In this document: in pieces, positions 5,454-54,276 of the stretch
Layout: every line of letters begins with the position of its first letter
Position numbering within the stretch: the stretch's first letter is position 1
Assembly (NCBI RefSeq): GCF_902713615.1
Contig: NC_052173.1
Coordinates: 12,410,152 to 12,474,151 of the forward strand
Origin: Scyliorhinus canicula
Lineage: Eukaryota
Length of the DNA: 64,000 bases
Direction: 5' to 3'
Program-made: the position numbers and the translations under genes
Notes under the pieces: generated by a model
The model's database searches: none
What the model was told of the DNA's origin: nothing
The model's input: only the letters and a program-made list of their open reading frames with translations

Positions 5454-7100
5454 TCAACTCTCTTCTGCACGACAGAGGAACCTCATACTCTGTGAAGCAT
5501 TTGGATAACTGACCATTTGAGTGGTGGTATAACTCATGGCAATCCCTGGCAGTGATTGTGTAACTGCCACCGGTGTAGAGATGGCAAGTGGTGCCATTGA
5601 GACTGGGGATGCCATCGCCTGGGCATAGGGTGCAGAGAGAGAAGCGCTAAGACGGGGCGGACTTTGGGCTAAAGCTTCAGAACACAAAGCATTGTGAGCT
5701 CTAGCTTGCGCTATCAATTCTTGATGAGAAATGGGCTGTGACCTCAGTGTCTGGTTGCTCAGGGTGGTGTGAGTCTCCACTATGCTATGGTTATAGTTGG
5801 TAACAGTGTGCATGGTTGGTTGTTGCGTTGGGTCAGCCCCGGTTTTCAGGATCCCCAACTTCACCTGCTTGCGCAAATCTGCATTCTGTTCCAGAAGGAC
5901 CTCATTGGTCAGCATTAGGCTTGACACCTGCTTTTTGAGTTCTTCATTGCGCTTTCTGAGCATATGATTTTCCTCCTCCAAAAAATTCAGTTCACGCGGG
6001 CGCAGACTAGGAGTGCTATAATCAAACACTTCAAACCGCAGGCCCTCGACCTTTCTCCTTTTCGGATGTTGTTCATAATCACATCTCTCAGTCTCATAGA
6101 GGTCATCCAAACGATCATATCTACAAGTCTCAGGAGAGAGTTCCCTATCTTGTGCTGACACACATTCTACACTTTTTTTATCATTGTCATCACGTTTCAA
6201 ATGCTGGAATTTACATTTGGAACCTCTTCGACACTTGCCCTTTAGAAAGTCCCGGCAGAATGGGATTTCCTTTGTAATAAGAGGAAGGTTAGAGGGCGAG
6301 AGACCAAAAGTCACAGCCACTGTCTGTTGCAAGTGAGCAGGAAGTTTCCCCGTTTTATTGTAGTAATTTTCATCCCCCTTTGTCCCATGAATGAACGTAC
6401 AGTTCTCCCGGGTACATTTACTATTCTGAAAGTACTGACAAAAGATTGATTCATGCCGCATGTCACCCACATTGTACGCCTCAACGTTGTCCGGGTGGAA
6501 GTACCTGCAATTCTTACCACGGTTGCAGACGTTGCGCAGAAAGTCGCGGCAAACATTCAGTTTGCTCTTGCTAGCCTCATATTTGCTATTATTGACTAAA
6601 TTATCAGCATCATCATTTAGATCAACATGGTTGGAGGCCTCAGTATCATCTGGGTGGAAGAACCTGCAATTCTTACCACGATTGCAGAGATTGCGCAGAA
6701 AGTCTCGGCAAATGTTCAGTTTGCTCTTGCCAGCCTCATCAGTGCCAATGTTCACTAAATTATCAGTGTTGTTCCTTATGTCAGTGAGGTCAGAAGCCTC
6801 AATATCATCTGGGTGAAAATACCTGCAATTCTTACCACGATTGCAGAGATTGCGCAGAAAGTCTCGGCAAATGTTCTGTTTGCTTTTACCAGCCTCATCA
6901 GTGCCCATGTTCACTAAATTATCAGTGTTGTTCCTTATGTCGGCGAGGTCGGAGGCCTCAGTATCATCTGGGTGGAAGTACCTGCAATTCTTACCACGGT
7001 TGCAGACATTGCGCAGAAAGTCTCGGCAAACATTCTGTTTGCTCTTGCCAGCCTCATATTTGCCGCTGTTGACTAAATTATCAGTGTCGTTCTCGGACAT
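5454..7100 (-). CDS. ZC3H10: ZC3H10-like paralog, zinc finger CCCH protein with expanded finger 1 (6 CCCH fingers), single coding exon, 548 aa
   Basis: Uninterrupted ATG-TGA ORF. Four copies of CRDFLRN(V/L)CNRGKNCR(Y/F)FH, then CQYFQNSKCTRENCTFIH and CRDFLKGKCRRGSKCKFQH, coiled coil LEEENHMLRKRNEELKKQV and TNYNH..THTTLS motif. Colinear with the ORF at 23219-24421. Polypyrimidine-CAG acceptor ends at 7149, just upstream. Confidence 0.9.
   Translation of the reverse strand: MSENDTDNLVNSGKYEAGKSKQNVCRDFLRNVCNRGKNCRYFHPDDTEASDLADIRNNTDNLVNMGTDEAGKSKQNICRDFLRNLCNRGKNCRYFHPDDIEASDLTDIRNNTDNLVNIGTDEAGKSKLNICRDFLRNLCNRGKNCRFFHPDDTEASNHVDLNDDADNLVNNSKYEASKSKLNVCRDFLRNVCNRGKNCRYFHPDNVEAYNVGDMRHESIFCQYFQNSKCTRENCTFIHGTKGDENYYNKTGKLPAHLQQTVAVTFGLSPSNLPLITKEIPFCRDFLKGKCRRGSKCKFQHLKRDDNDKKSVECVSAQDRELSPETCRYDRLDDLYETERCDYEQHPKRRKVEGLRFEVFDYSTPSLRPRELNFLEEENHMLRKRNEELKKQVSSLMLTNEVLLEQNADLRKQVKLGILKTGADPTQQPTMHTVTNYNHSIVETHTTLSNQTLRSQPISHQELIAQARAHNALCSEALAQSPPRLSASLSAPYAQAMASPVSMAPLAISTPVAVTQSLPGIAMSYTTTQMVSYPNASQSMRFLCRAEES
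6480..7086 (-). repeat. Coding tandem repeat, 4 x 159 bp (53 aa), each unit carrying one CCCH finger
   Basis: cctgcaattcttaccacg recurs at 6504, 6663, 6822 and 6981, an exact 159-bp period. Confidence 0.95.
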
Positions 7101-8917
7101 GTTTCCAGATTATTTCTGCGCTACTCAGCCAAGGCTCTCAATAAACCACTGCAAAAGAAAAAGAAGCCAGGTCTTTTACAATGAACAAGAGATTAATCTA
7201 CAAAGTAACTGTGGTTAATCCCTTTCTCACAAAAACATTGCAGATGCACTAACATCATGGATTCAATTAAAAAACTTATTTAGAGAGTGGCAGAAATTTT
7301 GTTTGAAAAACGCAAGGGAGAAGAAACATTACTTTGACCTGGATCTTGCTACAGTAACGACGATGAAATTATCAGCATTTGCCATCATTACTCCTCTGCA
7401 ACTGAAAGCAACTTCTAGAATCCGCACATGCGCAGAATAACGTGGGAATCAAGAAGTTGATGTCAGTGATTTTACTCTCCTCCTCTGGATCAAGCAAGAG
7501 TTTGTATTTTTATATGGAATATATTAATGCATTACAGGAGTTTTTAAAAAAAACACTGGCAAAACAAAACAATTGCCTTCTCAATCATTCTTGCTTTCGA
7601 AAAAAAGGGATTCTTGTGATATTTGTAGGAATTTATAAATAAAGAGACTTGCAATCAGCAGTGGAAACAAACTACTGAAGTATGCTGAGGAACAAATTAA
7701 AGAAATAGTGCTGATTTAGCTCACAAGAGCCTAGAGTTCAGTCTTCCAACAATTAAATCTTATTGCAACAAATACTATGTAAATAACTGAAAAGTCAACC
7801 GTGGACTTATCACGTGGAATTTCACAACAGAATCTATGCGCCAACTTTACCGCAGAAAATTCTTACAGCAAATAATTTCAGAATTGGTCCCTCAAATTCT
7901 AGTATTTTAAAAGAAATGTTTTAAAAGTTTGATGTCACACTTGAACGCTGTTAATGCCAAAATAGTCAAGGCAGGTATTTGATAGCTACTTGATATGACA
8001 GGTATATTTCAAACTACTAAATGCATTCCCAAATTACAAATTTGCAATATTACACACAAACACAACCATGACATGCTTATGGATTAATTTATACCATGTT
8101 ACAACTTTTATCCATACAGACTATTTATGGAAAACATAGGTATTAAATACAAACAGCATCAAGTTAACTTTTGCAATTTAACAGTGATTTAGAAATTAAA
8201 CACAAGTCACCCAATTTTCTTCGGCATCTTCAACATATATTGTCAACTTCATTGTAAGCTTTGTTATTGGAAATAAATGCTGTGGACTCTATTGCTACAA
8301 TTCACATTCCTCTTACACTACAATGTTTGACTCACATCGCTATTCCTTCACACCCTTTAATGAGGCAATGAAATACCATTTCTTCAAATTTCTCAAGGTA
8401 CTCCTGCCTCACTCTCTCGAATCTAACTAACAGTTACCACTTATTCCGATTGCTCTACCCAGAGTTCTCCTTTGTCATTTTACATCATCTCCTCTATTGC
8501 TAAAATTGTTCCCAAGAAGCTGTGCTTCTTTCATAACAAAAATCTTTCCATCCCCATTAATCCCCTGCCTCCATCCCCTCAACATGTCTTAACTCTAAAG
8601 TATGTCTATCAGAAATGATAACACTGTTCCCATATTTCAAGGGGTAGGAAAGAGGTTGACTCTTCTGGTATCGCTCATATTTCTGGATATGAAGTAAGAA
8701 AAGTAAGTCTGTTCGCCAATTTTCACCCCCTTTTTCTATTAACAACCGTTACATTTTAATTTCTAATAATAAAGTGCTTCTCCGAATTTTCTTCTTTAGT
8801 GCCCCCCAAGCTCCAAATATTGCTCTTCCTACATCCTCACAGTGATTAAGAAACAGTGTAATAAGTTTTGATTTAATCTAACTCATCTTTTCTCAGGACT
8901 TAAAAATAGTTGATTTT

Positions 8918-9440: not shown

Positions 9441-10904
9441 CTTTTCATTTTCTGTAGTGCCTCATAGAACAGCCTTAGTGCCTACGTTTTTTAATTTTAG
9501 AAAATCATCTTGATCAGCATTTTGCATCCAAGAGTATGGGTTTGATAGCAGCACATCACCAGAGAGGAGGAAAGGACCTGTTGCATTTTATTTTCTGCTA
9601 CCAGAGGCCTATTACTGACAGTAATCTAAAACATGTAAATGAGATTCAGTTGCATAGAAAGTGTAAATTGTTGGTCTAATTCCTTATAGTTCCATGTGAG
9701 AATGTCACAACTATCTGACAAATTGCTCCAAGTTCAGTACATCAAACTTAAAAAAGTTGATTCCAAGAGCAGCATAATGTCGACAAGTGATATCGTGCAA
9801 TTTGAAGTTGTTTTGCATCCTTGAGAGATTTGAACTTTACAGTGCGGCTCCAAATTCACAGAATATAACGTTTTGGTAAATAATTCCAACCAATTTCTGC
9901 TCCAATTTTTGATTACTGAACTCACTTTAATGTTACTATGCGGGGCAGGAAGGGCATTCCTTAACTATTTTTTCACCCAAGAAATAAAGATGGGACAGAG
10001 TACCCAATGACTATTGTTTTTTTGAAAAACTATATAGCAATCCAATCCAGTCAAAAAGCACATCAATGCATTCTGCCTCTCATCATCACCAACTCAGTAG
10101 GTAAATTAAACTTATAGTGTCGTACTGAGTAGCCATATAGGACAGCATGGTGCCAGGTTCACCCAGCTTACACTAAATTATCTCAACCAAGACAGCTGTG
10201 GAAGAATAAAATAGACATTAACTTCCCTTGATTATTAAAATCAAACAAAAAGCTCTAGCTTGAACACCATTAAAAAGTACACATATGGACAGCAGTGGGC
10301 ATAATATGGACATAATTAAGCTTGCCAGTGTGTCTCCATGGTTGAGTAGTTATCAATATTTATACGGGTTAATAATGACCACTTAGACAAAGCACTAAAG
10401 GAATCTGTCACCTGTGGGCACATACCTCACAGAGTGAGGTACGAGCTTTAGGACGGACTGGGAAAAAAGCTAGGCAGGACAGAGTGAGAGGGGGGGGGGG
10501 GAAGAGATCAGGATCTTCAAGATCATCTCTGATGCATTTCACAATGTACGATCCCAATAATAGCTGCAAATGAAAGGAGAAATCTGCTCCTTCCAGACAG
10601 GATGACAGAGAAAAATAATTTACCCTCCCTCATACCTTTTAAGTGATTGATCAAAGATCGCTGCTTAACTCCTCCTCTGCTGCTTGAATGGCAAAAGGTG
10701 CAGTGACCTAAAGTGGAAGATGGGGATTAAGAAACATTGTATAACTAAATATTCAAGATAATTTTAATCCAGTTGTCAAGATGTTTTTTAAAAAATCAAC
10801 TTATTTACTTAGAATCACAATGGTAACACAGTGGTTAGCACTGTTGCTTCACAGCGTCAGGGTCCCAGGTTCGATTCCCGGTTCGGGTTACTGTCTGTGT
10901 GGTG

Positions 10905-12731
10905 GACCTTTTATATGGTCACACTACTCTTATCTTTATGTGTTTTTGGTTTTCCTTTTTATTATTTTTGTTTTTCTTGTGTGTTTTTTGTTGTGGATTT
11001 TATGACCTGCATGTTTATTTACACGTGCAGGATTAGACCAGCATCCGCCACTGACACTGGGGTGGTGCTGGGCGTGATAACCAAGTAAAAGAACATAAAG
11101 TACCTGATGAATAAAACAAGAGGGGAGTGCCCCAAAACAGCGAGTGAAACACAGCCCAAAAAGAACGGGAAAGGGAACAAAAACTTAACAAAAACCCGTC
11201 AAAGTAAAGTGTGAAAATCGGTATTGATAAGGCAATCCAACCCCTGCGGTGCCCACCGAGCACGGAATGCTTCGAGTGTGCCCGTGGACACCGCATGCTC
11301 CCTCTCCAGGGACATCCGGCCGCGAACGTGGCTGTGAAAGATGGGCAGACAGTCAGGCTGGACAATCCCCTCGGTCGCCCGCTGCCTGGACCTATAAGTA
11401 GCAAGTTTGGCCCGGCCCAGGAGCAGGTTCACGAGGATGTCCTCCGCCTTCCCCACCCCCCTCCGCACCGGATGTCCGTAGATCAGGAGCGTGGGGCTGA
11501 AGTGCAAACAAAACCTCAACAACAACGTCGTCAAGAAATCAAAGAGGGAGTGCAGCCTAGGACAGACAAGATAAATGTGCTCCACGGTCTCCACCAGGCC
11601 GCAAAAGAGGCAGGTCTCTGGCAGAGCCGTGAAGTGGTAACACTGCCACGTTCAGCACCCTCCACCCTCCGCAGGTCACCGGGGTGAGTGAACATGAGGA
11701 GCACGTCATCAGCGTAAGCTGAGAGGACCACTCCCACGTCCGGCTCGCGCAGAACCAGCCCCGTTAACCTCCTCCGCAGGAGGCACAGGAAAGGCTCCAC
11801 GCATAGGGAATAAAGTTGACCGGACAGGGGGCAGCCCTGACGCACTCCTCTCCCAATGCGAAGGGGCGCCGTCAGGGATCCGTTAACCTTAATCAGACAC
11901 TCCGGGCGACAAAATGCGACCCGAACCCAAAGGCTTGCAGAGTCCCGAGCAAATACTCGTGCCCCACCCTGTCGAACGCCTTCTCCTGGTCAAGAGACAG
12001 GAAGGCGCTCGACATACCACGGGCAGCACGGTAGCATGGTGGTTAGCATAAATGCTTCACAGCTCCAGGGTCCCAGGTTCGATTCCCGGCTGGGTCACTG
12101 TCTGTGCGGAGTCTGCACGTCCTCCCCATGTCTGCGTGGGATTCCTCCGGGTGCTCCGGTTTCCTCCCACAGTCCAAAGATGTGCGGGTTAGGTGGATTG
12201 GCCACGCTAAATTGCCCGTAGTGTCCTAAAAATGTAAGGTTAAGGGGGGGGGGGTTGTTGGGTTACGGGTATAGGGTGGATACGTGGGTTTGAGTAGGGT
12301 GATCATTGCTCGGCACAACATCGAGGGCCGAAGGGCCTGTTCTGTGCTGTACTGTTCTATGTTCTACACCAGTCCTCTGGGAAAAATGAATAATGTCCCG
12401 GACCAGGTGGATGTCATAGATTGTGCGGTCCGGGACTGTGTAGGACTGGTCAGGGTGGATCATGTGGTCCAGTACCAGGCCAAGGCGTAAAGACAGCACC
12501 TTGGCAAAGATTTTATAGTTCGTGCTGAGGAGGGAGTTCTTAAGTTGGCGGACATCCTCCTTCTTGGGCAGCAGGGCAATGCTCCACGAAAGGGGCATCT
12601 CCACGGTCGCAATGCATTCCCCCAGGACTCCCGCATAGTCGCTCCCCAGGACGTCCCAGAACACCCTTAAGAACTCCACGGTCAGCCCGTCCAGCCCAGG
12701 GAATTTGCCCCGTGACAGGATGTTCAGGACT
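10905..12731 (-). mobile_element. 5'-truncated, internally deleted Tx1-like (L1 group) non-LTR retrotransposon
   Basis: GKFPGLDGLTVEF...FWDVLG, IHPDQSY, DQEKAFDRV, RQGCPLSGQLY, SAYADDV and C-terminal C..ETVEH...CPRL motifs. GC-rich body, A-rich 3' UTR. Splits a SINE and contains another SINE. Confidence 0.85.
12021..12366 (+). mobile_element. HE1-like tRNA SINE (tail type C, CR1-like LINE tail)
   Basis: A/B box head, V-core gtctgcgtggg..cctccgggtgctccggtttcctcccac, tail gggccgaagggcctgttctgtgctgta..ttctatgttcta shared with the LINE ends at 17297 and 37025. Confidence 0.85.
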
Positions 12732-13499
12732 GACTGCGGAGTCTGCACGTTCTCCCGGTGTCTGCATAGATTTGCTCCGGGTGCTCCGGTTTCCTCCCAC
12801 AAGTCCCGAAAGACGTGCTGTTAGGTGAATTGGACATTCTGAATTCTCCCTCTGTGACCCGAACAGGCGCCGGAATGTGGCGACTAGGGGCTTTTCACAG
12901 TCACTTCATTGCAGTGTTAATGTAAGCCTACTTGTGACAATAAAGATTATTATAAAGTGTGCACTTGGTGTGGCAACACTGATCGATCAGGAAGGTTTCT
13001 GATTCAATCGTTGTTGCATTACCTGATCTAGTTAATTCAGAGCACAGTGGAGAATCCATGGCAGTGAACCACAGAAGGGCACGGGGCCATGTAAAGTCCA
13101 TATTCTAGGTTCAGATTTTAAAGGAAGATTGGTGTACGTACTGGAATAAAGCACCAGAGGTTGGGCAGAAGCCATGGTCTGTACTGCCGTGCTACCAACA
13201 GTAAACCCGCTCCTGCATGCAATAAATGGGACGAAGTGACTTCAAATAATGTTGAAATGAGAAACTTAAAATCAAAATTCCCGTTATTGAAAATGATACT
13301 TTCGATATGGGAGCTCTTTAAAAAGTTCCTTATTTAGATTTTCATTTACACATTATCCTTGTTATATAAATAATCTCCAATTCTGTTTTTTTCCTCCCAA
13401 GCCAGTTATATCTTTTCAAATTGACAGTAGACACTCATTCCCTCCTTTCCTCAGAATAATAATCGTTCTTCGGCCTACCGGCATTCAGTCAGAAACCCT

Positions 13500-23218: not shown

Positions 23219-24421
23219 ATGCCGGATAAAGATAATTTATTTAACAGTGGTAATGATGAGGCTGGCCACAGCTCAGATGATATTTGCCGAGACTTCCTGC
23301 GCAATGTCTGCAAACGTGGTAAGCGCTGCAAGTTCTACCACCCTGACATTAATGAGGTGTCCGACTTGGGCGTAAAAAAGAATGAATTTGTCTTTTGTCA
23401 TGACTATCAGAACAAGGAGTGCACCCGCATTAACTGCAAGTTTATTCATGGAACAAAAGAGGACGAGGATCATTACAAAAAGTCAGGAGAGCTTCCCCCA
23501 CGCCTGCGTCTTACAGTGGCCATGGGTCTTGGCCTTTCACCTTCTGACCTCTCTTTTAAAAAAGGTGAGGTCCCAATCTGCCGAGACTACCTGAAAGGTG
23601 ACTGTCAAAGAGGATCTAAGTGCAAATTCCGACATTTGAAACGTGATGAATACGAGTATGAAAACAGAACTTTGGAGAGGTTGTCAAGAGACCAAGTGCT
23701 TTCACCTGTAGTGCGTCGATATGACCCATTCGATGACCTCTATGACACCGATCGCTATACTGATTACGACCATGTCCTAAAGCGACGAAGAGTCGATGGC
23801 TTGCGATTTGAAACTTATGATTTTAATATCCCTAATTCACGTCCAGTTGACTATCGGTTTCTGGAGGAGGAGAATCTGATGCTCCGAAAGCGTGTTGAAG
23901 AACTCAAGAAGCAGATCTCAAATTTGATGGCAACTAATGAGGTACTTTTGGAGCAAAACGCACACTTCCGCAACCAAACTAAGGTGGTCACGTTGACTTC
24001 CACTCCCACTGCGACAGAGCAAACACTGGCAGCACCAACTGTGGGCGCAATCACCAATTACAACCATGGTATAGCGCAGACTCACACCACGTTGAGCAGC
24101 CAAGCACTTCAACCACGACCTGTCACCCAGCAAGATTTAGTGGCAACTGCTGGAGCTTCAGCTGTGCCACCTACCAATGCTGCACCAACAGCACAGCATC
24201 TTAATCCTGAGATTGCTTCTCTGCCTGCAGCACTTGCCCAGACCATTGCCCAGGGAATGGCACCTCCAGTTTCCATGGCCCCAGTGGCTGTCTCTGTTGC
24301 ACCAGTGGCAGTATCAATTGCACAAGCACTGCCAGGAATTACCATTAGCCATGCCACCACTCCAATGGTTACTTATCCAATTGCATCGCAGAGTATGAGG
24401 ATAACAGCAATTCCTCACTGA
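23219..24421 (+). CDS. ZC3H10: Zinc finger CCCH domain-containing protein 10, single coding exon, 400 aa
   Basis: MPDKD...ICRDFLRNVCKRGKRC...FCHDYQNKEC...GLSP...VPICRDYLKGDCQRGSKCKFRH...LEEENLMLRKRVEELKKQ...SQSMRITAIPH matches vertebrate ZC3H10 as I recall it. True ATG is at 23219; the ORF track starts at a GTG. Acceptor ttctttttcAG at 23170-23171. Confidence 0.96.
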   Translation: MPDKDNLFNSGNDEAGHSSDDICRDFLRNVCKRGKRCKFYHPDINEVSDLGVKKNEFVFCHDYQNKECTRINCKFIHGTKEDEDHYKKSGELPPRLRLTVAMGLGLSPSDLSFKKGEVPICRDYLKGDCQRGSKCKFRHLKRDEYEYENRTLERLSRDQVLSPVVRRYDPFDDLYDTDRYTDYDHVLKRRRVDGLRFETYDFNIPNSRPVDYRFLEEENLMLRKRVEELKKQISNLMATNEVLLEQNAHFRNQTKVVTLTSTPTATEQTLAAPTVGAITNYNHGIAQTHTTLSSQALQPRPVTQQDLVATAGASAVPPTNAAPTAQHLNPEIASLPAALAQTIAQGMAPPVSMAPVAVSVAPVAVSIAQALPGITISHATTPMVTYPIASQSMRITAIPH

Positions 24422-25944: not shown

Positions 25945-26057
25945 TTTTTTAAAACGCATTTTATTCAAACTTGTATCAAAGTAGGTTACAGCAAATAAAC
26001 ACCCCGGGAAACATTCTTCCCAACAATCAACTATACAGTTTGTACAGATTTTTCTTC

Positions 26058-26124
<67 letters not shown>

Positions 26125-29100
26125 CCGCGATGCCGACCGCCACTCCAGCAAAATTCCCCGCCGTGCAATCAGAGAGGCGAAGGCCAAGACATCGACCTTC
26201 CTCCTCTCCATGAGCTCCGGCTTCTCTGAAACCCCAAATATCGCCACCAAAGGGTCCGGGTCCACTCCCTCCTCCACTATCCTGGCTAAGACCGTGAACA
26301 CTCGCGTCCAGAATCTTCCCAATTTTTCACAACCCCAAAAATGTGCGCATGATTGGCTGGCCCCCGCCCACGCCTCTCACACTCATCTGCTACCCCCTGA
26401 AAGAACCCACTCATTCTCGCCCGAGTCATATGCACCCTGTTCACCACCTTAAACTGTATCAGGCTCATCCTCGCACAAGAGGATGTCCCATTTACCCTTC
26501 GCAGTGCCTCACTTCATACTCCTCAATTGATCTCTATTCCCAACTCTGCATCCCATTTCTCCTTGACCTTCACCACCCGCTCGCCTCCCTGCTCCCCCAG
26601 CCACTTATATATATCCCCAATTCTTCCCTCCCCTTCCACATCCGGAAGCAGCAGTCACTCCAGCAGGGTGTATCCCAGCAATCTAGGGAACCCCTTCCAG
26701 ACCTTTCGTGCAAAGTCCCTAACCTGCAGGTACCTGAACTCACTACCCCTCAGCAGCTCTACCCTCTCCCTTAGCTCCTCCAGACTGGCGAACCCTTCCT
26801 CCAAATACAGATTCCTCACCTTGACCAGCCCCACTTCTCTCCACCTCCTGTATACACTATCCATCCCCCCCAGCTCAAACCCATGATTCTCACACAGCGG
26901 CGTTAGCATCGACATCCCTTCCACCCTAAAATGCCTCCTCAGCTGATTCCATATCTTCACCGTGGACGGCACCACTGGGCTCCCTGAATACCTACGCGGA
27001 GCCATTGGCAATGCTGCCGTCACCATAGCCCTCAAACTAGACCCCTTACAAGATTCCTCCTCCATCCTAACCCACTCTACCCCTTCTCCTTCCCACCTTT
27101 CTCCTTCCCACCATCACTGCCGCACCTTGTCCACATTCGCTGCCCAATAATAATGAAGCAAGTTTGGCAACGCCAACCTCCCCTGCTGCCTCTGCCTCTG
27201 TAGCAGGGTCCTCCCCACCCTTGGCACCTTGCACATCCATACAAAGTCGGAGATGATTGTGTCCGAAAAAAGACTTTTGGTATAAAGATCGGGAGAGCCT
27301 GAAAGATAAACAAGAACCTCGGCAGAATATTCATTTTCACCACTTGGCCCCTCCCCGCCAACGTTAAGTGCAGTGTATCCCACCTCTTAAGATCCTCCCT
27401 GGCCTCCTCCACCAGCTTTGTTAAGTTCCCGAATCCCCAAGTATGTAAACCTATCCCTCGCTACCGTAAATGGCATCCCCCATAAATTAGCCCGCTGTGC
27501 CAGCTCATTCACCGGGAATACCTTGCTTTTCTCTATATTCAGCTTGTATCCCGAGAACCCTCCAACCTCCCCAATAATCCTTCCCATGCTCTCCAACGGA
27601 TCCGAAACATACAGCAAGAGGTAATCGGCATAGAGCAACACTCGATGCTCCCTCTGTCCCCTCATTATCCCCTGCCACTCTGCCGACCCCCTGAGAGCCA
27701 TCGCCAATGGCTCTATGGCCAGCACAAACAGCAGCGGCGATAGCGGGTACCCCTGCCTCGTAACCCTGTGTAAGTCAAAGCTTCATGAGCTCATATCATT
27801 CGTCCTCACCCTCGCTGCGCCACATACAGCAACCACACCCATGCCACAAATCTCGGCCCAAACCCAAAAATTCGAACAAGTACCGCCAATCCACCCAATC
27901 AAATGCTTTCTCCGCGTCCATGGACACCACAACCTCCGGTACCAGAACTCTCGACGGATTCATCACCACATTCAACAGCCGTCTTATATTACTCACGAGC
28001 TGCCTGCCCTTTACAAAGCCTGTTTGATCTTCTGCAACCACCCCTGGGACACAATCCTCCATCGTCCCCGCCACCAACTTAGCCAATACTTTCACATCCG
28101 TGTGCAATAGCGATATGGGTCTATACGACCCACGTTCCACCGGATCCTTCCCTGTTTTGGGGATTAGTGTGATTACTGCTTGCTTCATCGTCACCGGCAA
28201 CTCCCCCTTCTCCAGTGCTTCATTAAACGCCCCCAACAGATGTGGTGCCAGGTCCGCCGCAAATTCCTTATAAAATTCTGCCGGTACCCATCCGGCCCAG
28301 GGGCCTTCCCCGACTTCATATCCCTGATACTATCAAGCACCTTCCTCAGCCCCAGGGGCTCCTCCAACGCCTGCCTCTTTGCTTCCTCCACCTGGGGAAA
28401 TTTCAACTCGTCCAGAAACCACCCCATGTCCCCCTTCTCTCCTCCTGGGTCTGCCTCATAAAGTCCCTGGTAATACTCTCTAAATGCCTCATTTATCTTC
28501 CCTGGCTCTGACACCACATCCCCAGCCCCAGTCTGGATCTTCAATATTTCCCTGGACGCAGCCTGCCTCCGCAGCTGGTGCACCAGCATGCGGCTCGCCT
28601 TCTCCCCATACTCGTATTGCACCCCTCTTGCCCTACCCAGTTGCCCTACTGCCCTCCCCATTGTCAGCCTGTCAAATTGCCCCTGCAAGTTTTTCCTCCT
28701 CGCCAATCCCTCCACGGTGGGCACCCTCGAATATTCCCTGTCCACCTCCACTATCTCGCTAACTAGACGGTCATGTTCCGCCCTCCTTTCCTTATTCGCA
28801 CGAATCGTAAATGAGAATTTCTCCCCGGACCACTGCCTTCAGTGCTTCCCAAGAAATGCCCGGCCACACCTCCCCATTCTGATTGAACTCCACATAATCC
28901 CTAATCGCCAACCGCACCTTATCACAAAAACCTCCATCCGCCAACAACCCCGAGTCAAACCTCCACCCCGGCCTCTGCTCTCGTCCCGTACTGAACCGAA
29001 TATCCAGCCAGTGGGGTGCATGGTCCGAGATAACTATCCCCGTATACTCTGCCCCCTCCACCCCACCCAAAAACCCCGACCCACTACAAAGTAATCAGTC

Positions 29101-31321
29101 CTCGAATACGCCTTATAGACGTGTGAAAAGAAGGAATACTCCCCCTTCCCCCTGGGTTCTGAAAGCGACATGGATCCACCATACCCTTCCCCTCCATAAA
29201 CCCACCCAGCTCCCTTGTCATTCGTACCCTACCCATCGGCCTGGGGCTCGATCTATCCACCCTCGGCTCCAGGACACAGTTAAAATCTCCTCCCATGATC
29301 AACTGGTACGTGGCCAAATCCGGGATTGCTGCCAGCAACCCCCTCATAAAACCCACATCATTCCAATTTGGGGCATACACATTTACCAACACTACCGGTG
29401 CCCCTTCCAATACCCCACTCACAATCACATATCTCCCACCTGGACCCCTCACCACCTTCGCACTCTCAAATCCCATTTTTTTGCTAATTAAAATTGCCAC
29501 ACCCCTCAATTTCAAATCAAACCCCGAGTGAAAAACCTGCCCGACCCACCCCTTCCTTAACCTAACCTGGTCCTTCACACGGATGTGTGTCTCCTGCAAA
29601 AAGACATCCCCTGCTTTCAAGCTCCTGAGGTGCGTGAACACACGCGACCTTTTAACCGGCCCATTCAGTCCCCGGATGTTCCACGTTACCAACCTTACTG
29701 TCGTGCGCCTCTAATCCCCTCTACCGTCCATCATCTTCCCCACTTAACTCCTGCCCCTTTAATTCCACTCTGTACCTAGCCCATCCAAGAGGGCCCCTTT
29801 CTTCGCCCTTGACCATGTCATCTCTCACCCCCTGCCACGTCGCTTTTCTTCTTCCCCCCCCCCCCCCCCCGGCCACCCCTCTTGGCCACCGCCGCACTTC
29901 CATTCACGAGCATAACCTGCTAGCGCGGCTGCCCCTGCCCCAAAGGCACATCCTAATGAACCCCCCCCCCCCACTCCTCAGCTCAAAGAAAAAGGCCTCC
30001 TGCTGGCCTTACCCTCCCCGGCCCAAACAAGGACTTCTCCTGAACTCCAAAAGCAAACAAACGGATGTTAAACACAAACAGTCCCATAAAATAGGAGGGG
30101 GGATGGGAACATCCATCCCACATAAACTTTTCACCCCTACAACTCCTTACACTCTCAACATTGAACAGAACCCCCCCCCCCCCCCCCAAAAAAACGAAAA
30201 TCCCCCAAATCTCCACCCACTTCAGACATGCTCCCGACCATTACATAGCGCCAGCACCCCGGTTCCCAAGCATTGTCCACTCAGTTCTCCCCCAGTTTAT
30301 GCTCCTTCATGAAGTATTTGGCGCTTCTGGGATCTCAAAATAATACTCCCGGCCTCCGAACGTCACCCATAATTTCGCCGGGTAGAGTACCCCAAACCTG
30401 ATCTGCCGCCGGTACAGCACCGCCTTGGCCTTGTTGAAACCTGCCCGCCGTTTTGCCAACTCGGCTCCGATGTCCTGATAAATCCAGATGTTATTTCCCT
30501 CCCAGTCGCAGCTACGCTTCTCCATGGCCCACCGTAGAATTTTCTCTTTCTCCACAAATTTATGGAGTCTCACGATCACCGCCCGTGGCGGCTCCCCAGC
30601 TCTAGGCTTTTGCCTCCGAGACCTATGAGCTCGGTCCACTTCAGGTGCCTTATCTAGCACCCCTTCTGCCACCAGTCCCGCCAGCATCCTCGAGACGTGC
30701 CTCGTGGCACTCACACCTTCCACTCCTTTGGGCAGGCCCACTATTCACAGGTTCTGCCTTCTTGAGGCATTCTCCTGCTCCTCCACCTTTGCCCTCTGTT
30801 TTACAGAGGTCTCCTAGGAGCCCCACCTCTGCCTCCAGAGCCACCACACAATCGCTGTGGTCCGAGGTCACTCCTTCAATCTCTCGAATCTATGGCCCCT
30901 GCACCTCCAAACACCTCTCCATCCGCTCCAAAGTACTCTTCAGAGGTGCCACAGCTTCTGCAATGGCCTTTGCATGATCCTCATGCATTTCTTTCCTCTG
31001 TTTATTGAATTCCTCCTTGATAAAAGTCATCAGTTCCTGTATCTGGGGCCTTACAGCTTGCCCCTCCCCCGCCTGCATGCTGGAAGAGAATGTGTGAAGC
31101 ACAAGACTGTTCCAACTTTCCAGCCAAACCTCTCACTGTTTTCTGCCGGGTCCAGTGATCAGAAGACATACCATTCCAGGGCTAAACTACTCCTTTAACA
31201 TTCGCCTACGCCTTTTCATCAAAATTCCACCCGGATCTGGGTAAAAAGAGCCCTTTTCTGTGACTCTGAACAGGAACAGCCCTTTATGTGACCAATCACT
31301 CCATGGTCACAAGCGGAAGTC
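25945..31321 (-). mobile_element. Full-length L1-clade LINE (ORF1 + APE/RT ORF2, multiply frameshifted)
   Basis: ORF1 motifs AHRS...PRAVIVRLH...IYQD...LYPAKL (30307-31100). APE motifs TWNIRGLN, LQETH, NVYAPN, GGDFN, SDH. RT motifs KAPGPDG, YRPISLL, DAEKAFD, LYAD. 3' AATAAA + short polyA. 15-bp TSD acaaaatcattttct at 25930-25944 and 31322-31336. Confidence 0.95.
26059..26121. repeat. Poly-C tract (63 nt) near the L1 3' end
   Basis: Directly visible homopolymer. Length may be unreliable. Confidence 0.85.
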
Positions 31322-51700: not shown

Positions 51701-54157
51701 GCATCTGTTCATCACGACCATGTCACTGAACTTTAAAGGTCCTACAGTAACCCATCCCGATCCCAGAACCACAATCACTTCAAAAGCAATGCGAACACTA
51801 TATGGGGAACTTTTACCTCAATCAGCGGGATCGCCAGAACTGACCCCAACTCACAGCTTTGCTTTTGCCTCTTGTTTTTTTTTAAACTTTTATTTCCCAG
51901 CAATTTGCAAAGATAACAAACGTGTACAACGCAGAAAGCACCCGTGCTGCATGTCACACTTTCCAACATCTCCAGCAAACCCGAGGGGGTCACAAACCAT
52001 TGGATAGAGTTCTAAAGACCCTGAAAATACCCGGCTTGTAAAAGTGGTACATTTCACCCATATTTATTTAAAATAAAGTTCCGCGCCTGACAAAAGTAAC
52101 ACTCCAAATAAAGTCGCAAAACAAATTCAAATATGTTGCAGACGAACTGAAGCAGAAACTAAGACTTCCCCTGAAAATGATCAATCGTTTTGACATTAAA
52201 CCGGTGGGGTATTCTCAGGCTATCGAATAAATATTCATCTCAGAAGCACTCACACCAGCTGTCAGAAATTCAGCTTACAACTAAAGCAATAATCACCAAA
52301 GACTCCTTTGTTGTTTACAGTACCTGATCTTTGGCATTTTCATCGTTCAATAAACTCCACTGAATTAAACGGGATCGACCAGTCATGGAGCTGGACCCAG
52401 AGAAATCCTGGACTCTTGTTCCACATTAGATTTTTTAATTAACCTTAAATAATGGTTGAATTGAGTACTGCACATAGCTCCAGAGAGCAAAAGCATTGAG
52501 AAATATTGCTACATTTCAAACGTGAGGAATTACTTCGAATTGATTTGTCAAAGGCATCAGACGAGACAGCCAGGCAATTATTGCAATGTTTTACAGGTTT
52601 TCAGGAAATGGGGAACTTTTAGCATTGGAATTATTTATTCACGTTGAACAAAACCTCATTTCATTTCGTTTAATTCTCGGTGGCGGGTAGGCTCCCTAAT
52701 TTTCCTGCCTCCCTCTAGATTCTAACTTTGGGCGAATGTTTAAATCCTAAAATTCAGACGGGCTCAGAATTGGGAAGCTTCTTGAATCTGTTCTCGAGAG
52801 CAGCAATTCTCTGCGGAGAAAGAAACAGGGTTAACAGTTCGAGTCAGGGTAACTCTTCTCCACAGCTCCGAGGAAGAGTCATTGCAGACCTGAAACTTTA
52901 ACTCTGTTTCTCAGACCTGCTGAGTTTATCCAGCATTTTCGGATTTCCATTTTGCTTTTATCCCAGTTTCCCCCTAAACCCCTTTAAAAATAAAAGTTCA
53001 CCACCTTCAAAAATGCAGTATTTACTAGCTGGTTGTGTACATTAATTGTTTTGACTCGCAGTAGACTAAACAAATGTATATTTAAAGTGTAACAATCCTG
53101 TTTCAATGACCAGTGTTTTGAAAAGTAAACGGGAGCAACTCTTCAACACCTTCCACCCCCACACGTAACATTATTTTTTGAAAGATTTTGAAGTGCCACT
53201 TTACTGAGCTTGTTCACTGTTATATTTCCCTGTCACTAATTACATTAATTCCCACGTCCTCCTTATTATACAGACGGGAATATTACTCTCGGGTACTTTA
53301 TTTTCCTATTCAAATCAAATATTTTTCCTATTCAAATCAAATATTTTTCCTATTCAAGTCAAATATTTTTCCTATTCAAGTCAAATATTTTTAGAATTTA
53401 TGCATTTATTACTTCAAAAAGCATTTTAACAGAGTTCCAGATATACTTTCTTTTACTCATTGAGTTGCTAATTAGATAACGTTTAATTTTTACACCAATT
53501 TAATTGTATAGATTTTGGATTAATGGGTCTCACACCCTTAACACTTTTGCAACATGTGTTAATGTTGCCTCAATTCATTCTCAAAGATATTTCAGATCTC
53601 AAGCCCATTGTCTCAATAAAGGAAAGGTTAAATTTTGGTCTTTACCCCCATTATCTCTTCATTCTTTGCTTTTTCCAGGACATTTATCGTTTTGCTTACC
53701 ACTTTAATATTTGCTTTCAAAGTAAGGTTTTAGTTTGCACAGATTCATATTTTAACTTTCTTTTTCTTCACAAGTGCACGTTTGCCAACATATTTACCGT
53801 GTTGAGCCCCAGGTTGCCCCGCACAGAGGGAGGGGTGACCCCATACAGCACCGCTGCCCCCGCCACTGCCCCCAGCAGCTGAGCTACCATGTACATGACA
53901 CAGCGGAATATGCTCAGCTGCGCCCCCAGCAGGTAGGCGAAGGTAACGGCCGGGTTGAGATGTGCCCCGCTGACATGTCCAACCGCCTGTACCAGGGCAG
54001 CCAGGACAAAGCCAAACCCCAAAGAAACCAGCAGCACGTTCACGGGGCCCGGAGACCATCGCATGGTAAAGCCCAGTCCAAAAAACACGAAGAGCATGGT
54101 GGCAAAAAACTCTGCAAAGACTGCCCTCCAAAAGGAGATAGATTTCAGCTCCCACAT
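42595..54157 (-). CDS. MIP: Lens fibre major intrinsic protein / aquaporin-0, 4 exons, 263 aa (gene span; join 54157-53798, 46387-46223, 44442-44362, 42780-42595)
   Basis: Exon sizes 360+165+81+186 = 792 nt, all GT-AG, phase 0. [15 protein letters not shown] start, two NPA motifs, ...[10 protein letters not shown]...ELKTQAL* end. Same length and exon layout as mammalian MIP. Confidence 0.97.
42872..43107 (-). mobile_element. Type A SINE in MIP intron 3
   Basis: Consensus match. TSD catcttttactttcat. Confidence 0.88.
44362..44442 (-). CDS. MIP: Aquaporin-0 exon 3 (aa 176-202, second NPA); not in the ORF track
   Basis: ttcttcAG|[27 protein letters not shown]|GTAAGA, 81 bp, translated by hand. 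Confidence 0.96.
44525..45565 (+). mobile_element. CR1-group LINE 3' fragment with two nested type A SINEs (44617-44835, 45246-45443) in MIP intron 2
   Basis: [20 protein letters not shown] and FFTQRVV.IW..LP motifs. SINE TSDs taggggcattgag and aaaagggaattgg. Confidence 0.8.
46223..46387 (-). CDS. MIP: Aquaporin-0 exon 2 (aa 121-175)
   Basis: ttctttAG|[55 protein letters not shown]|GTAAGT. Confidence 0.96.
46690..47020 (+). mobile_element. LINE 3' end (CR1/L2 group); second copy at about 57945-58195
   Basis: Shared WNSLP..ctgcagcggttcaagaaggcagctcacca.caccttct.aagg..caa.tagggatgggc tail. Confidence 0.7.
48300..48560 (-). mobile_element. Degenerate Deu-domain SINE
   Basis: cagcaagatcccacaaacaacaatg..at and gggaactccctgctc..ccatgg.atct are the reverse complement of the element at 56385-56790. 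Confidence 0.6.
48631..48828 (+). mobile_element. Type A SINE in MIP intron 1
   Basis: Consensus match. TSD attagtctgaatc. Confidence 0.85.
49670..50630 (-). repeat. Deu-SINE whose ~60-65-bp core segment is tandemly amplified about 11 times
   Basis: gcgcacagca(a/g)gatccca-like motif near 49815, 49874, 49942, 50006, 50073, 50186, 50250, 50311, 50373, 50428, 50485. Both flanks continue the Deu-SINE consensus seen at 48300 and 56385. Confidence 0.7.
50625..51185. repeat. CA-rich minisatellite (acatctactgtacacag variants, 10-17-bp units, local 80-bp higher-order repeat)
   Basis: Directly visible. atacagacattttctgtacacatctataga at 50791 and 50871. Confidence 0.9.
52815..52945. mobile_element. 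Foldback Penelope-type pLTR remnant
   Basis: gaaacagggttaac..ttcgagtc..actcttc / gaggaagagtc..gacctgaaactttaactctgtttc inverted arms, then gacctgctgagttt.tccagca. Confidence 0.6.
53298..53392. repeat. 23-bp tandem repeat x4 (tttttcctattcaaatcaaatat)
   Basis: Directly visible. Confidence 0.9.
53798..54157 (-). CDS. MIP: Aquaporin-0 exon 1 (aa 1-120, first NPA)
   Basis: [21 protein letters not shown]...[11 protein letters not shown]...RGNLGLNT, then donor GTAAAT at 53797. Confidence 0.97.
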
Positions 54158-54276
54158 CGTTCCCGATCTTCCAAAGAGCAGACTATTAAAACAAAACAGA
54201 AAATAAAAAAAAGTGATGAAGTCGTCTCCTGGCTCCTCAAACGTTTCCCCCAAAATTTAATTGCACAGAATGAAGT

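Follow-up and report, generated by a model that had tools for sequence, protein, structure and literature searches.

Does the open reading frame for a six-finger CCCH zinc-finger protein in the genome of Scyliorhinus canicula represent a functional gene, and is the four-fold repetition of its first finger an old, stable feature, a rapidly changing repeat or an error of assembly? The frame lies in a 64,000-nucleotide stretch of contig NC_052173.1 (positions 12,410,152 to 12,474,151 of the forward strand), which we call the window; coordinates are positions in the window unless a contig is named. A three-finger ZC3H10 gene, called here the parent, is located in the same window, and the six-finger gene is called the paralog. 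In all likelihood the paralog is a genuine, intact, transcribed and elasmobranch-wide gene derived by inverted tandem duplication of ZC3H10 and a single old quadruplication of one module, and its product is predicted to be a multivalent nuclear nucleic-acid binder. The two genes are:

5454-7100, minus strand: six-finger ZC3H10 paralog, complete coding sequence (CDS) in a single coding exon, an uninterrupted open reading frame (ORF) of 548 amino acids plus stop.
23219-24421, plus strand: three-finger ZC3H10 gene (parent), head-to-head with the paralog.

The N-terminal part of the paralog is formed by repeated copies of finger 1. Tandem Repeats Finder (TRF) identified a single tandem array at 6493-7092 with a period of 159, 3.8 copies, 86% matches, 0% indels and a score of 843. 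Translation of the ORF sets the true extent of the array at 6450-7085 on the minus strand, 636 bp in length, and divides it into four in-frame units of 159 bp (53 amino acids) covering residues 6-217:

6927-7085, minus strand: unit 1, finger-1 copy with the KYE/NVC/RNV signature, residues 6-58.
6768-6926, minus strand: unit 2, finger-1 copy with the NIC/RNL signature, residues 59-111.
6609-6767, minus strand: unit 3, finger-1 copy with the tail ...SNH.DL.DD, residues 112-164.
6450-6608, minus strand: unit 4, finger-1 copy adjoining finger 2 and colinear with finger 1 of the parent, residues 165-217.

The C-x7-C-x5-C-x3-H finger is intact in all four units. A unit matches ZC3H10 from about residue 4 to about residue 56, almost its entire N-terminal segment, which comprises finger 1 and the sequence on either side of it as far as finger 2. 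Units 1 and 4 share KYE, NVC and RNV; units 2 and 3 share GTDE, NIC and RNL. The finger cores are basic (76 amino acids in total, net charge +16), with a charge of +4 per core compared with +6 in finger 1 of the parent. The linkers are acidic and rich in asparagine and aspartate (136 amino acids with 30 D+E, 13 K+R and 21 N, net charge -17). Pfam scored five CCCH stretches in the six-finger protein (zf-CCCH_10, E = 2.7e-33). An earlier note on this DNA had proposed an in-frame four-fold amplification of finger 1 giving six CCCH fingers, and the translation, the Pfam result and the alignment to the parent confirm it. TRF and the ORF translation likewise recovered the four 159-bp units with intact fingers and acidic linkers that the note described, and the signatures shared by units 1 and 4 and by units 2 and 3 are present, as is NRGKN in all four units where the three-finger gene has KRGKR. 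The interval 6480-7086 given for the array located it correctly but is 30 bp short at the unit-4 end.

On the plus strand the array is crossed by antisense ORFs of 118 amino acids (6460-6816) and 125 amino acids (6841-7218). Their simplest explanation is that the repeat unit by chance lacks stop codons in that frame.

The basic residues of the parental motif had been exchanged by the time the units multiplied. None of the 68 units in 17 proteins carries K or R before RGKN; the residue at this position is N, T, S or H. NRGKN proper is typical of galeomorph sharks only, and batoids have mostly T or S in units 1 and 4. The second basic position is encoded by AAT in 20 of 20 units from five genomes, as opposed to CGC in the parent, which differs at all three codon positions. 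Because AAT is universal and differs from CGC throughout, one replacement before the amplification is by far the simplest history, and the claim that both basic residues were gone before amplification holds. The weakening of the individual fingers that had been expected from this loss is not a necessary consequence, because ZnF3 of MBNL1, a functional finger, reads C-N-R-G-E-N, which the array motif NRGKN resembles in the HMMER alignment.

Membership of the paralog in the ZC3H10 family is evident from its whole architecture. All three ZC3H10 finger types are present in order, the first type four times (regular-expression search and Pfam), and they are followed by a basic cluster resembling a nuclear localisation signal (NLS), a zipper helix and a conserved C-terminal region. 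The paralog and the neighbouring ZC3H10 are 51% identical over 394 colinear amino acids from unit 4 through the C-terminal region. Their alignment matches up the Ser-Pro sites, the KRR(K/R)V-GLR clusters and the leucine zippers, and the zipper and basic cluster rank among the most similar regions of the two proteins. The extreme C-terminus of the paralog (...RFLCRAEES) differs from that of ZC3H10. Comparison with ZC3H10 of birds, reptiles, amphibians, coelacanth and ray-finned fishes gave E values of 1e-118 to 1e-84 at about 45-52% identity. The paralog thus resembles vertebrate ZC3H10, a protein of three CCCH fingers, NLS, bZIP/coiled coil and Pro-rich tail, in finger spacings and the order F1-F2-F3, in the Ser-Pro site, basic cluster, zipper and C-terminal motif, and in having the whole CDS in one exon behind an intron in the 5' untranslated region (5'-UTR). 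In contrast, vertebrate ZC3H10 has one F1 module where the paralog has four, and K-R-G-K-R where the paralog has (N/T/S/H)-R-G-K-N.

The paralog is nevertheless not the ortholog of vertebrate ZC3H10. In a tree calculated from finger 2 onward, eight paralogs formed a separate clade with 100/100 support on a long branch, positioned between the cartilaginous-fish and bony-vertebrate ZC3H10 groups; the true ortholog is the gene at 23219-24421. The start codons of the two genes are 16.1 kb apart in the window, and in the skate Rhinoraja the paralog and ZC3H10 are likewise head-to-head, 13.1 kb apart. Therefore, the inverted tandem arrangement is ancestral. These data show that ZC3H10 was duplicated as an inverted tandem copy, the 53-residue N-terminal module of which was then quadruplicated after the basic residues of K-R-G-K-R had been replaced.

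The six-finger protein is distributed across elasmobranchs. A search of 5.8 billion proteins returned full-length relatives of 545-557 amino acids with 84-93% identity and the RefSeq name "zinc finger CCCH domain-containing protein 10-like". The exact sequence of the window protein is already public (P0121) and shares a 90% cluster with the RefSeq "ZC3H10-like" proteins of many elasmobranchs. Besides that of the window, the four-unit protein was found in 16 named elasmobranch species and in skate transcripts. The carriers include the galeomorph sharks Chiloscyllium plagiosum, C. punctatum, Scyliorhinus torazame (97% identical to the window protein), Stegostoma, Cetorhinus, Mustelus and Heterodontus, the squalomorph sharks Heptranchias and Pristiophorus, and the batoids Narcine (electric ray), two Mobula species (mantas), Hemitrygon and Hypanus (stingrays) and the skate Rhinoraja. 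The sawfish Pristis pectinata is a seventeenth named species, at the level of its genome. Exactly four finger-1-type units are present in 17 of 17 proteins and in each of the five genomes examined, all Cys and His ligands are invariant in 17 species, and the ORF is intact in every genome examined. When the array was compared with 1.84 billion representatives at 50% identity, a single strong cluster was found (E = 2e-133), which is restricted to elasmobranchs; the next-best matches were unrelated multi-CCCH proteins at 27-31% identity, some of them with amplified finger arrays of their own.

The units are orthologous by position. Across the 17 proteins, the best match of each unit in Heptranchias is the unit at the same position. 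The exception is Scyliorhinus: in both proteins of this genus, unit 1 is closest to Heptranchias unit 2 at the protein level but to unit 1 at the DNA level (93% versus 90%). Unit 2 of the window shares 95% DNA identity with unit 2 of Heptranchias. Among 16 units from the window, Heptranchias, Narcine and the skate transcripts, DNA identity averages 89.9% when the position is shared and the species differ. For unlike positions it is 80.2% within and 80.1% between species. A maximum-likelihood tree of the same 16 units, rooted on the unit of the parent, resolved a unit-3 clade (99/99) and a unit-4 clade (100/100), each spanning shark, ray and skate. Units 2 and 3 group together (81/74), and unit 1, with very short branches nearest the root, is closest to the parent. 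The four position labels require only three changes on this tree, the minimum possible. Species-specific shared variants were looked for and none were seen, nor were the units homogenised within species; concerted evolution was therefore rejected as the cause of the similarity of the finger cores. Because the units are orthologous by position, the array arose once, before the split of sharks and rays, and its units diverged independently afterwards. The last shared ancestor of the two groups thus already possessed four units, and the array has stayed frozen from then on. The divergence of these lineages is dated to roughly 250-300 million years ago by published timetrees. A plausible history is that a first duplication produced units 1 and 4, and that a diverged middle unit was subsequently duplicated to give units 2 and 3. 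The pairing of units 2 and 3 in the tree fits the successive unequal crossovers suggested by the earlier note.

The positional orthology bears directly on the proposal, also made in that note, that the array is a copy-number-variable coding minisatellite with fast turnover. Head-to-tail units of 159 bp at 86% identity could in principle misalign, and two differences in protein length speak for the proposal. The RefSeq protein of Pristis pectinata has 495 amino acids, exactly one unit fewer. In Pristiophorus japonicus (P0003), a small extra tandem duplication in the linker of unit 4 (KYEA-S/T three times) extends the protein to 557 amino acids; no other genomic change of length was seen within the array. 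However, the Pristis genome (L010:10001-11647) contains an uninterrupted ORF of 1647 bp that encodes 548 amino acids with four units, so the 495-residue form is a feature of the gene model or of the RNA, and a copy-number variant in sawfish was rejected. The 17 proteins match position for position, homogenisation is absent, and omega within the array is only 0.10-0.28. The minisatellite interpretation is therefore largely refuted between species and we regard it as very improbable. The related claim of a rapidly evolving zinc-finger array also failed, since omega is well below 1 throughout. PRDM9 and the KRAB-ZNF proteins are the type cases of tandem, in-frame, fast-evolving zinc-finger repeats. 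The array of the paralog shares with them the tandem in-frame repetition of fingers, but its fingers are CCCH and not C2H2, and it shows no turnover, concerted evolution or high omega.

Selection on the gene was estimated by pairwise Nei-Gojobori (NG86) comparisons of four species:

Four finger cores: dN 0.017-0.039, omega 0.10-0.19.
Array linkers: dN 0.067-0.121, omega 0.21-0.28.
F2-F3 region: omega 0.01-0.04.
Non-array part overall: omega 0.09-0.15.

Purifying selection acts across the gene, and within the array it is strongest on the finger cores; the linkers are constrained as well. The comparison of finger with linker that had been advised as a check agrees with the expectation that the fingers are the more constrained part. 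These values also argue against an array assembled in error or a gene decaying as a pseudogene. Recent tandem repeats are sometimes mis-assembled, and dN of the paralog is approximately three times that of the parent at comparable shark-batoid distance (0.086 for window versus Narcine, and 0.028 for the parent, window versus Rhinoraja). However, omega is about 0.1 outside the array, the ORF is nowhere disrupted among the genomes examined, and the same architecture occurs in independent assemblies of many species and in RNA contigs. Four units, each with position-specific substitutions, recur in skate transcripts and in the genomes of four further elasmobranchs, so the array is not an assembly artefact. 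Either form of this explanation is extremely improbable.

Transcription of the paralog is documented in a skate. A four-unit protein that is 84% identical to that of the window (P0005) derives from short contigs of seven sequencing runs, and two more variants of 512 amino acids in its cluster are also full length. At 94% DNA identity to the Rhinoraja genome, the transcripts originate from another skate. Four contigs from four runs (L004-L006 and L008), those that reach far enough upstream, have one upstream junction in common. Alignment of L004 and L008 to the Rhinoraja genome showed a non-coding exon (L011:5284-5431) spliced onto the coding exon at a point 48-49 nt upstream of the ATG. This point is an AG after a pyrimidine tract that is conserved in every genome and reads ...TTTT(G/A)CAG. 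These skate contigs are spliced mRNAs from which a 5'-UTR intron of approximately 4.5 kb was removed. A further contig, L003, follows the genome without interruption, as expected of unspliced RNA or DNA. The corresponding elements of the window are:

7101-7148, minus strand: 48-nt 5' leader of the coding exon, after a pyrimidine tract and AG splice acceptor, assigned by homology to the skate junction.
10650-10800, minus strand: approximate position of the non-coding 5'-UTR exon or promoter-proximal region, assigned by weak homology to the skate exon.

The match to the skate 5'-UTR exon at 10683-10723 is weak (E = 6e-6), and the region is colinear with upstream DNA of Heptranchias that holds a homolog of the exon.

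The shortened Pristis model raises the alternative that the number of fingers is varied at the RNA level, with in-frame splicing of 159 nt as an "exitron" yielding isoforms with five, four or three fingers. The model omits exactly 159 nt between units 1 and 2, and the only GT-AG-compatible point in the ambiguous interval is the AG|GT within the codons TGC-AGG-TAC. The codon that creates this site is AGG in 18 of the 20 units of five genomes; it is AGA in the other two, which destroys the GT. The contexts of the donor (GTACTT) and acceptor are weak, all skate contigs from the seven runs carry four units, and the two other 512-residue variants are of full length. Template switching by reverse transcriptase between direct repeats and the behaviour of aligners are well-known sources of such gaps. 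Possible origins of the Pristis gap are in-frame splicing, a template switch, an effect of the aligner and an RNA donor with a three-unit allele. Exitron splicing as a source of finger-number variation is improbable.

The finger cores are also unusually conserved at synonymous sites, which exitron splicing could help to explain. In orthologous units of five genomes, with pairs pooled and small numbers of sites, synonymous differences among codons for identical residues amount to 6.7% in array cores, 14.8% in linkers and 23% in the cores of F2 and F3, so that they are about three-fold rarer in array cores than in F2 and F3. For single shark-ray pairs, array cores differ from the F2-F3 region with Fisher p = 0.005-0.018, and 10 of the 19 codons of the core do not vary among the 20 units. 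The conservation spans the entire core and extends beyond the AG|GT junction, which counts against exitron splicing. In the window species, dS between finger 1 of the parent (23285-23341) and the unit cores is only 0.2-0.48, whereas F2 and F3 have reached saturation between the two genes. The corresponding dS for parent finger 1 and unit cores in the skate is 0.74-2.1, and finger 1 of the chimaera has many synonymous differences from the cores. Candidate causes of the low synonymous divergence are short-tract gene conversion limited to the cores and possibly including the parent, RNA-level signals such as AG|GT, or local mutational or codon constraints. It is doubtful, with only a small chance of being correct, that the cores are under a second, nucleotide-level constraint with the number of fingers perhaps tuned at the RNA level, the 495-residue sawfish form being one isoform of in-frame 159-nt splicing, or that short-tract gene conversion including the parent took place.

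What the six-finger protein may do can be proposed from the elements that it retains downstream of the array:

6387-6440, minus strand: finger 2, C-x7-C-x4-C-x3-H, residues 221-238.
6201-6257, minus strand: finger 3, C-x7-C-x5-C-x3-H, residues 282-300.
6282-6305, minus strand: GLSPSNLP, putative counterpart of the Ser-Pro site S126 of mammalian Zc3h10, aligned with GLSPSDL of the parent.
6036-6062, minus strand: basic cluster KRRKVEGLR, putative counterpart of the ZC3H10 NLS, aligned with the parent.
5844-5999, minus strand: long helix predicted by AlphaFold, leucine-zipper or coiled-coil region, residues 368-419, strongly resembling the zipper of the parent.

According to PMC6911170, which cites Treiber et al. 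2017, ZF1 and ZF2 of mammalian ZC3H10 are RNA-binding and mutation of either abolishes the binding of pri-miRNA. The same article describes the requirement of the bZIP region of mammalian Zc3h10 for DNA binding and identifies S126 as a p38 MAPK site. The RNA motif of ZC3H10 is GCAGCG / AGUGCAG (PMC11612968), and in the human protein the NLS (residues 205-213), the three fingers and the coiled coil are all needed to repress interferon-stimulated genes (PMC13375009). By alignment, GLSPSNLP is probably equivalent to the p38 MAPK target S126 and KRRKVEGLR to the human NLS. Since the NLS-like cluster, the Ser-Pro site, fingers 2 and 3 and the zipper have been retained, the paralog is probably a nuclear nucleic-acid-binding factor, which would dimerise with itself or with ZC3H10. 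Each unit is predicted to bind zinc and RNA; its zinc ligands are conserved and it is under purifying selection. Four copies of ZF1 on flexible acidic linkers would form an extended multivalent RNA-binding platform, with up to eight ZF1 in a dimer, and this may alter avidity or spacing preference for short GC-containing motifs.

Alternatively, the paralog may act mainly as a modulator of ZC3H10, forming a heterodimer through the zipper in which the extra fingers and acidic linkers alter or dampen binding. The strong resemblance of zipper and basic cluster between the two proteins favours such a role, as do the cores, each two positive charges short of that of the parent, and the negatively charged linkers. 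The divergent gene arrangement allows co-regulation, and the coiled coil is required for the function of human ZC3H10 (PMC13375009). However, strong purifying selection on four finger cores is hard to explain if they were mere spacers. A mainly modulatory role is possible, although we consider it rather unlikely; it is compatible with the paralog being a multivalent nuclear nucleic-acid binder.

The structural comparisons place the array within the CCCH superfamily. The closest solved structures by sequence are MBNL1 ZnF3/4 (PDB 3D2Q/3D2S) and the CPSF30/Yth1 arrays, with E values of 1.2e-7 and 1.4e-5. The core CR-D/E-F/Y-x-R-x-x-C-N-R-G-x-N-C-R-F-x-H-P aligns with MBNL1, which, similarly to CPSF30/Yth1, is a multi-finger RNA binder. 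MBNL1 fingers form compact pairs with a linker of about 15 residues, whereas the linkers of the paralog are acidic, 34 residues long and fall in an alignment gap, so the array lacks the short-linker layout of an MBNL-type tandem. Shared descent of the paralog with MBNL1 and CPSF30 is implied only at the level of the CCCH superfamily. Other eukaryotic proteins with amplified CCCH fingers (for example P0139 and P0142) resemble the array in having tandem near-identical fingers with periods of 40-55 residues, but they are only 27-31% identical to it and unrelated outside the fingers, and represent independent amplifications.

Several observations weigh against the interpretation of the paralog as a conserved, expressed multivalent nuclear binder. 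The evidence of expression comes from a skate, a species other than that of the window. In the skate contigs L003-L009, a 1-nt deletion relative to Rhinoraja at about nt 1506 of the CDS shifts the frame of the last approximately 50 residues and shortens the product to 512 amino acids; the deletion was located in one contig (L003), and all seven contigs encode the same 512-residue product. A different frame of the frameshifted transcript still spells out the conserved C-terminal motif. The RefSeq models of Hemiscyllium ocellatum are split over about 5 kb into an array-only product of 180 amino acids and a post-array product of 335 amino acids (P0132 and P0134), which suggests an insertion, gap or disruption inside unit 4 of that assembly. 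The skate frameshift and the split Hemiscyllium models indicate that the gene may not be indispensable everywhere. The full-length AlphaFold2 model, calculated from a 41-row alignment, has a mean predicted local distance difference test score (pLDDT) of 39 and is confident only in finger 2 (about 70) and in the helix of residues 368-419, the sole long confident element (52 residues, pLDDT about 80-93). A model of the pair of units 3 and 4, from a 34-row alignment, also has a mean pLDDT of 39. Because these models of the array are unusable, the proposed separate folding of the fingers and disorder of the linkers are predictions from sequence conservation. Nuclear localisation, dimerisation, heterodimerisation with ZC3H10 and multivalent RNA binding are likewise predictions from sequence. 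Finally, the duplication tree is unrooted and contains no outgroup (no cyclostome), and forcing the paralogs to group with elasmobranch ZC3H10 costs 4.2 log-likelihood units, which is not rejected by the approximately unbiased (AU) test (p = 0.0875). An elasmobranch-only origin of the duplication is thus neither shown nor rejected, and deeper origins are possible. In the chimaera Callorhinchus, no paralog was found within 10 kb upstream of ZC3H10 or among the annotated proteins. Crown elasmobranchs set the minimum age of the duplication.

Elsewhere in vertebrates, ZC3H10 is a highly conserved single-copy regulator with roles in mitochondria and thermogenesis, in the processing of microRNAs and in the control of interferon-stimulated genes. 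In elasmobranchs a second copy, with a quadruplicated RNA-binding finger 1, has persisted from a time before the shark-ray split. The paralog thereby offers a natural experiment on the relationship between the valency of CCCH fingers and nucleic-acid recognition, and its array is a clear case of a minisatellite-like tandem coding repeat that has been frozen in number and order. Amplification of a finger with its linker is no surprise in principle, as it recurs among CCCH proteins. The gene itself was already known from automatic RefSeq models, and the six-finger architecture within a known family is new; our literature search found no paper that describes the six-finger gene or relevantly combines ZC3H10 with sharks.

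The surroundings of the two genes contain further recognisable elements. The first exon of an aquaporin gene (MIP/AQP0-like, with an NPA motif) is located downstream of ZC3H10 at 53768-54253 on the minus strand, and a MIP gene adjoins ZC3H10 of the chimaera Callorhinchus (L013:18698-21221); both fit a conserved ZC3H10-MIP neighbourhood. Rhinoraja longicauda has two near-identical three-finger ZC3H10 proteins of 397 amino acids (P0011 and P0014), the former encoded at L012:10001-11194; both are listed with a longest contig of 11,531,874 bp, and the pair could reflect a recent extra duplication or two haplotypes of one gene. Between the two ZC3H10 genes (11000-12800) and downstream of the three-finger gene (26000-30800) lie G+C-rich repeats and pieces of retrotransposon ORFs of the reverse-transcriptase and endonuclease-like kinds. 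A SINE-like ORF fragment (...GSTVVSTVASQ.QGP.FDSRLG...) recurs at several places in the window.

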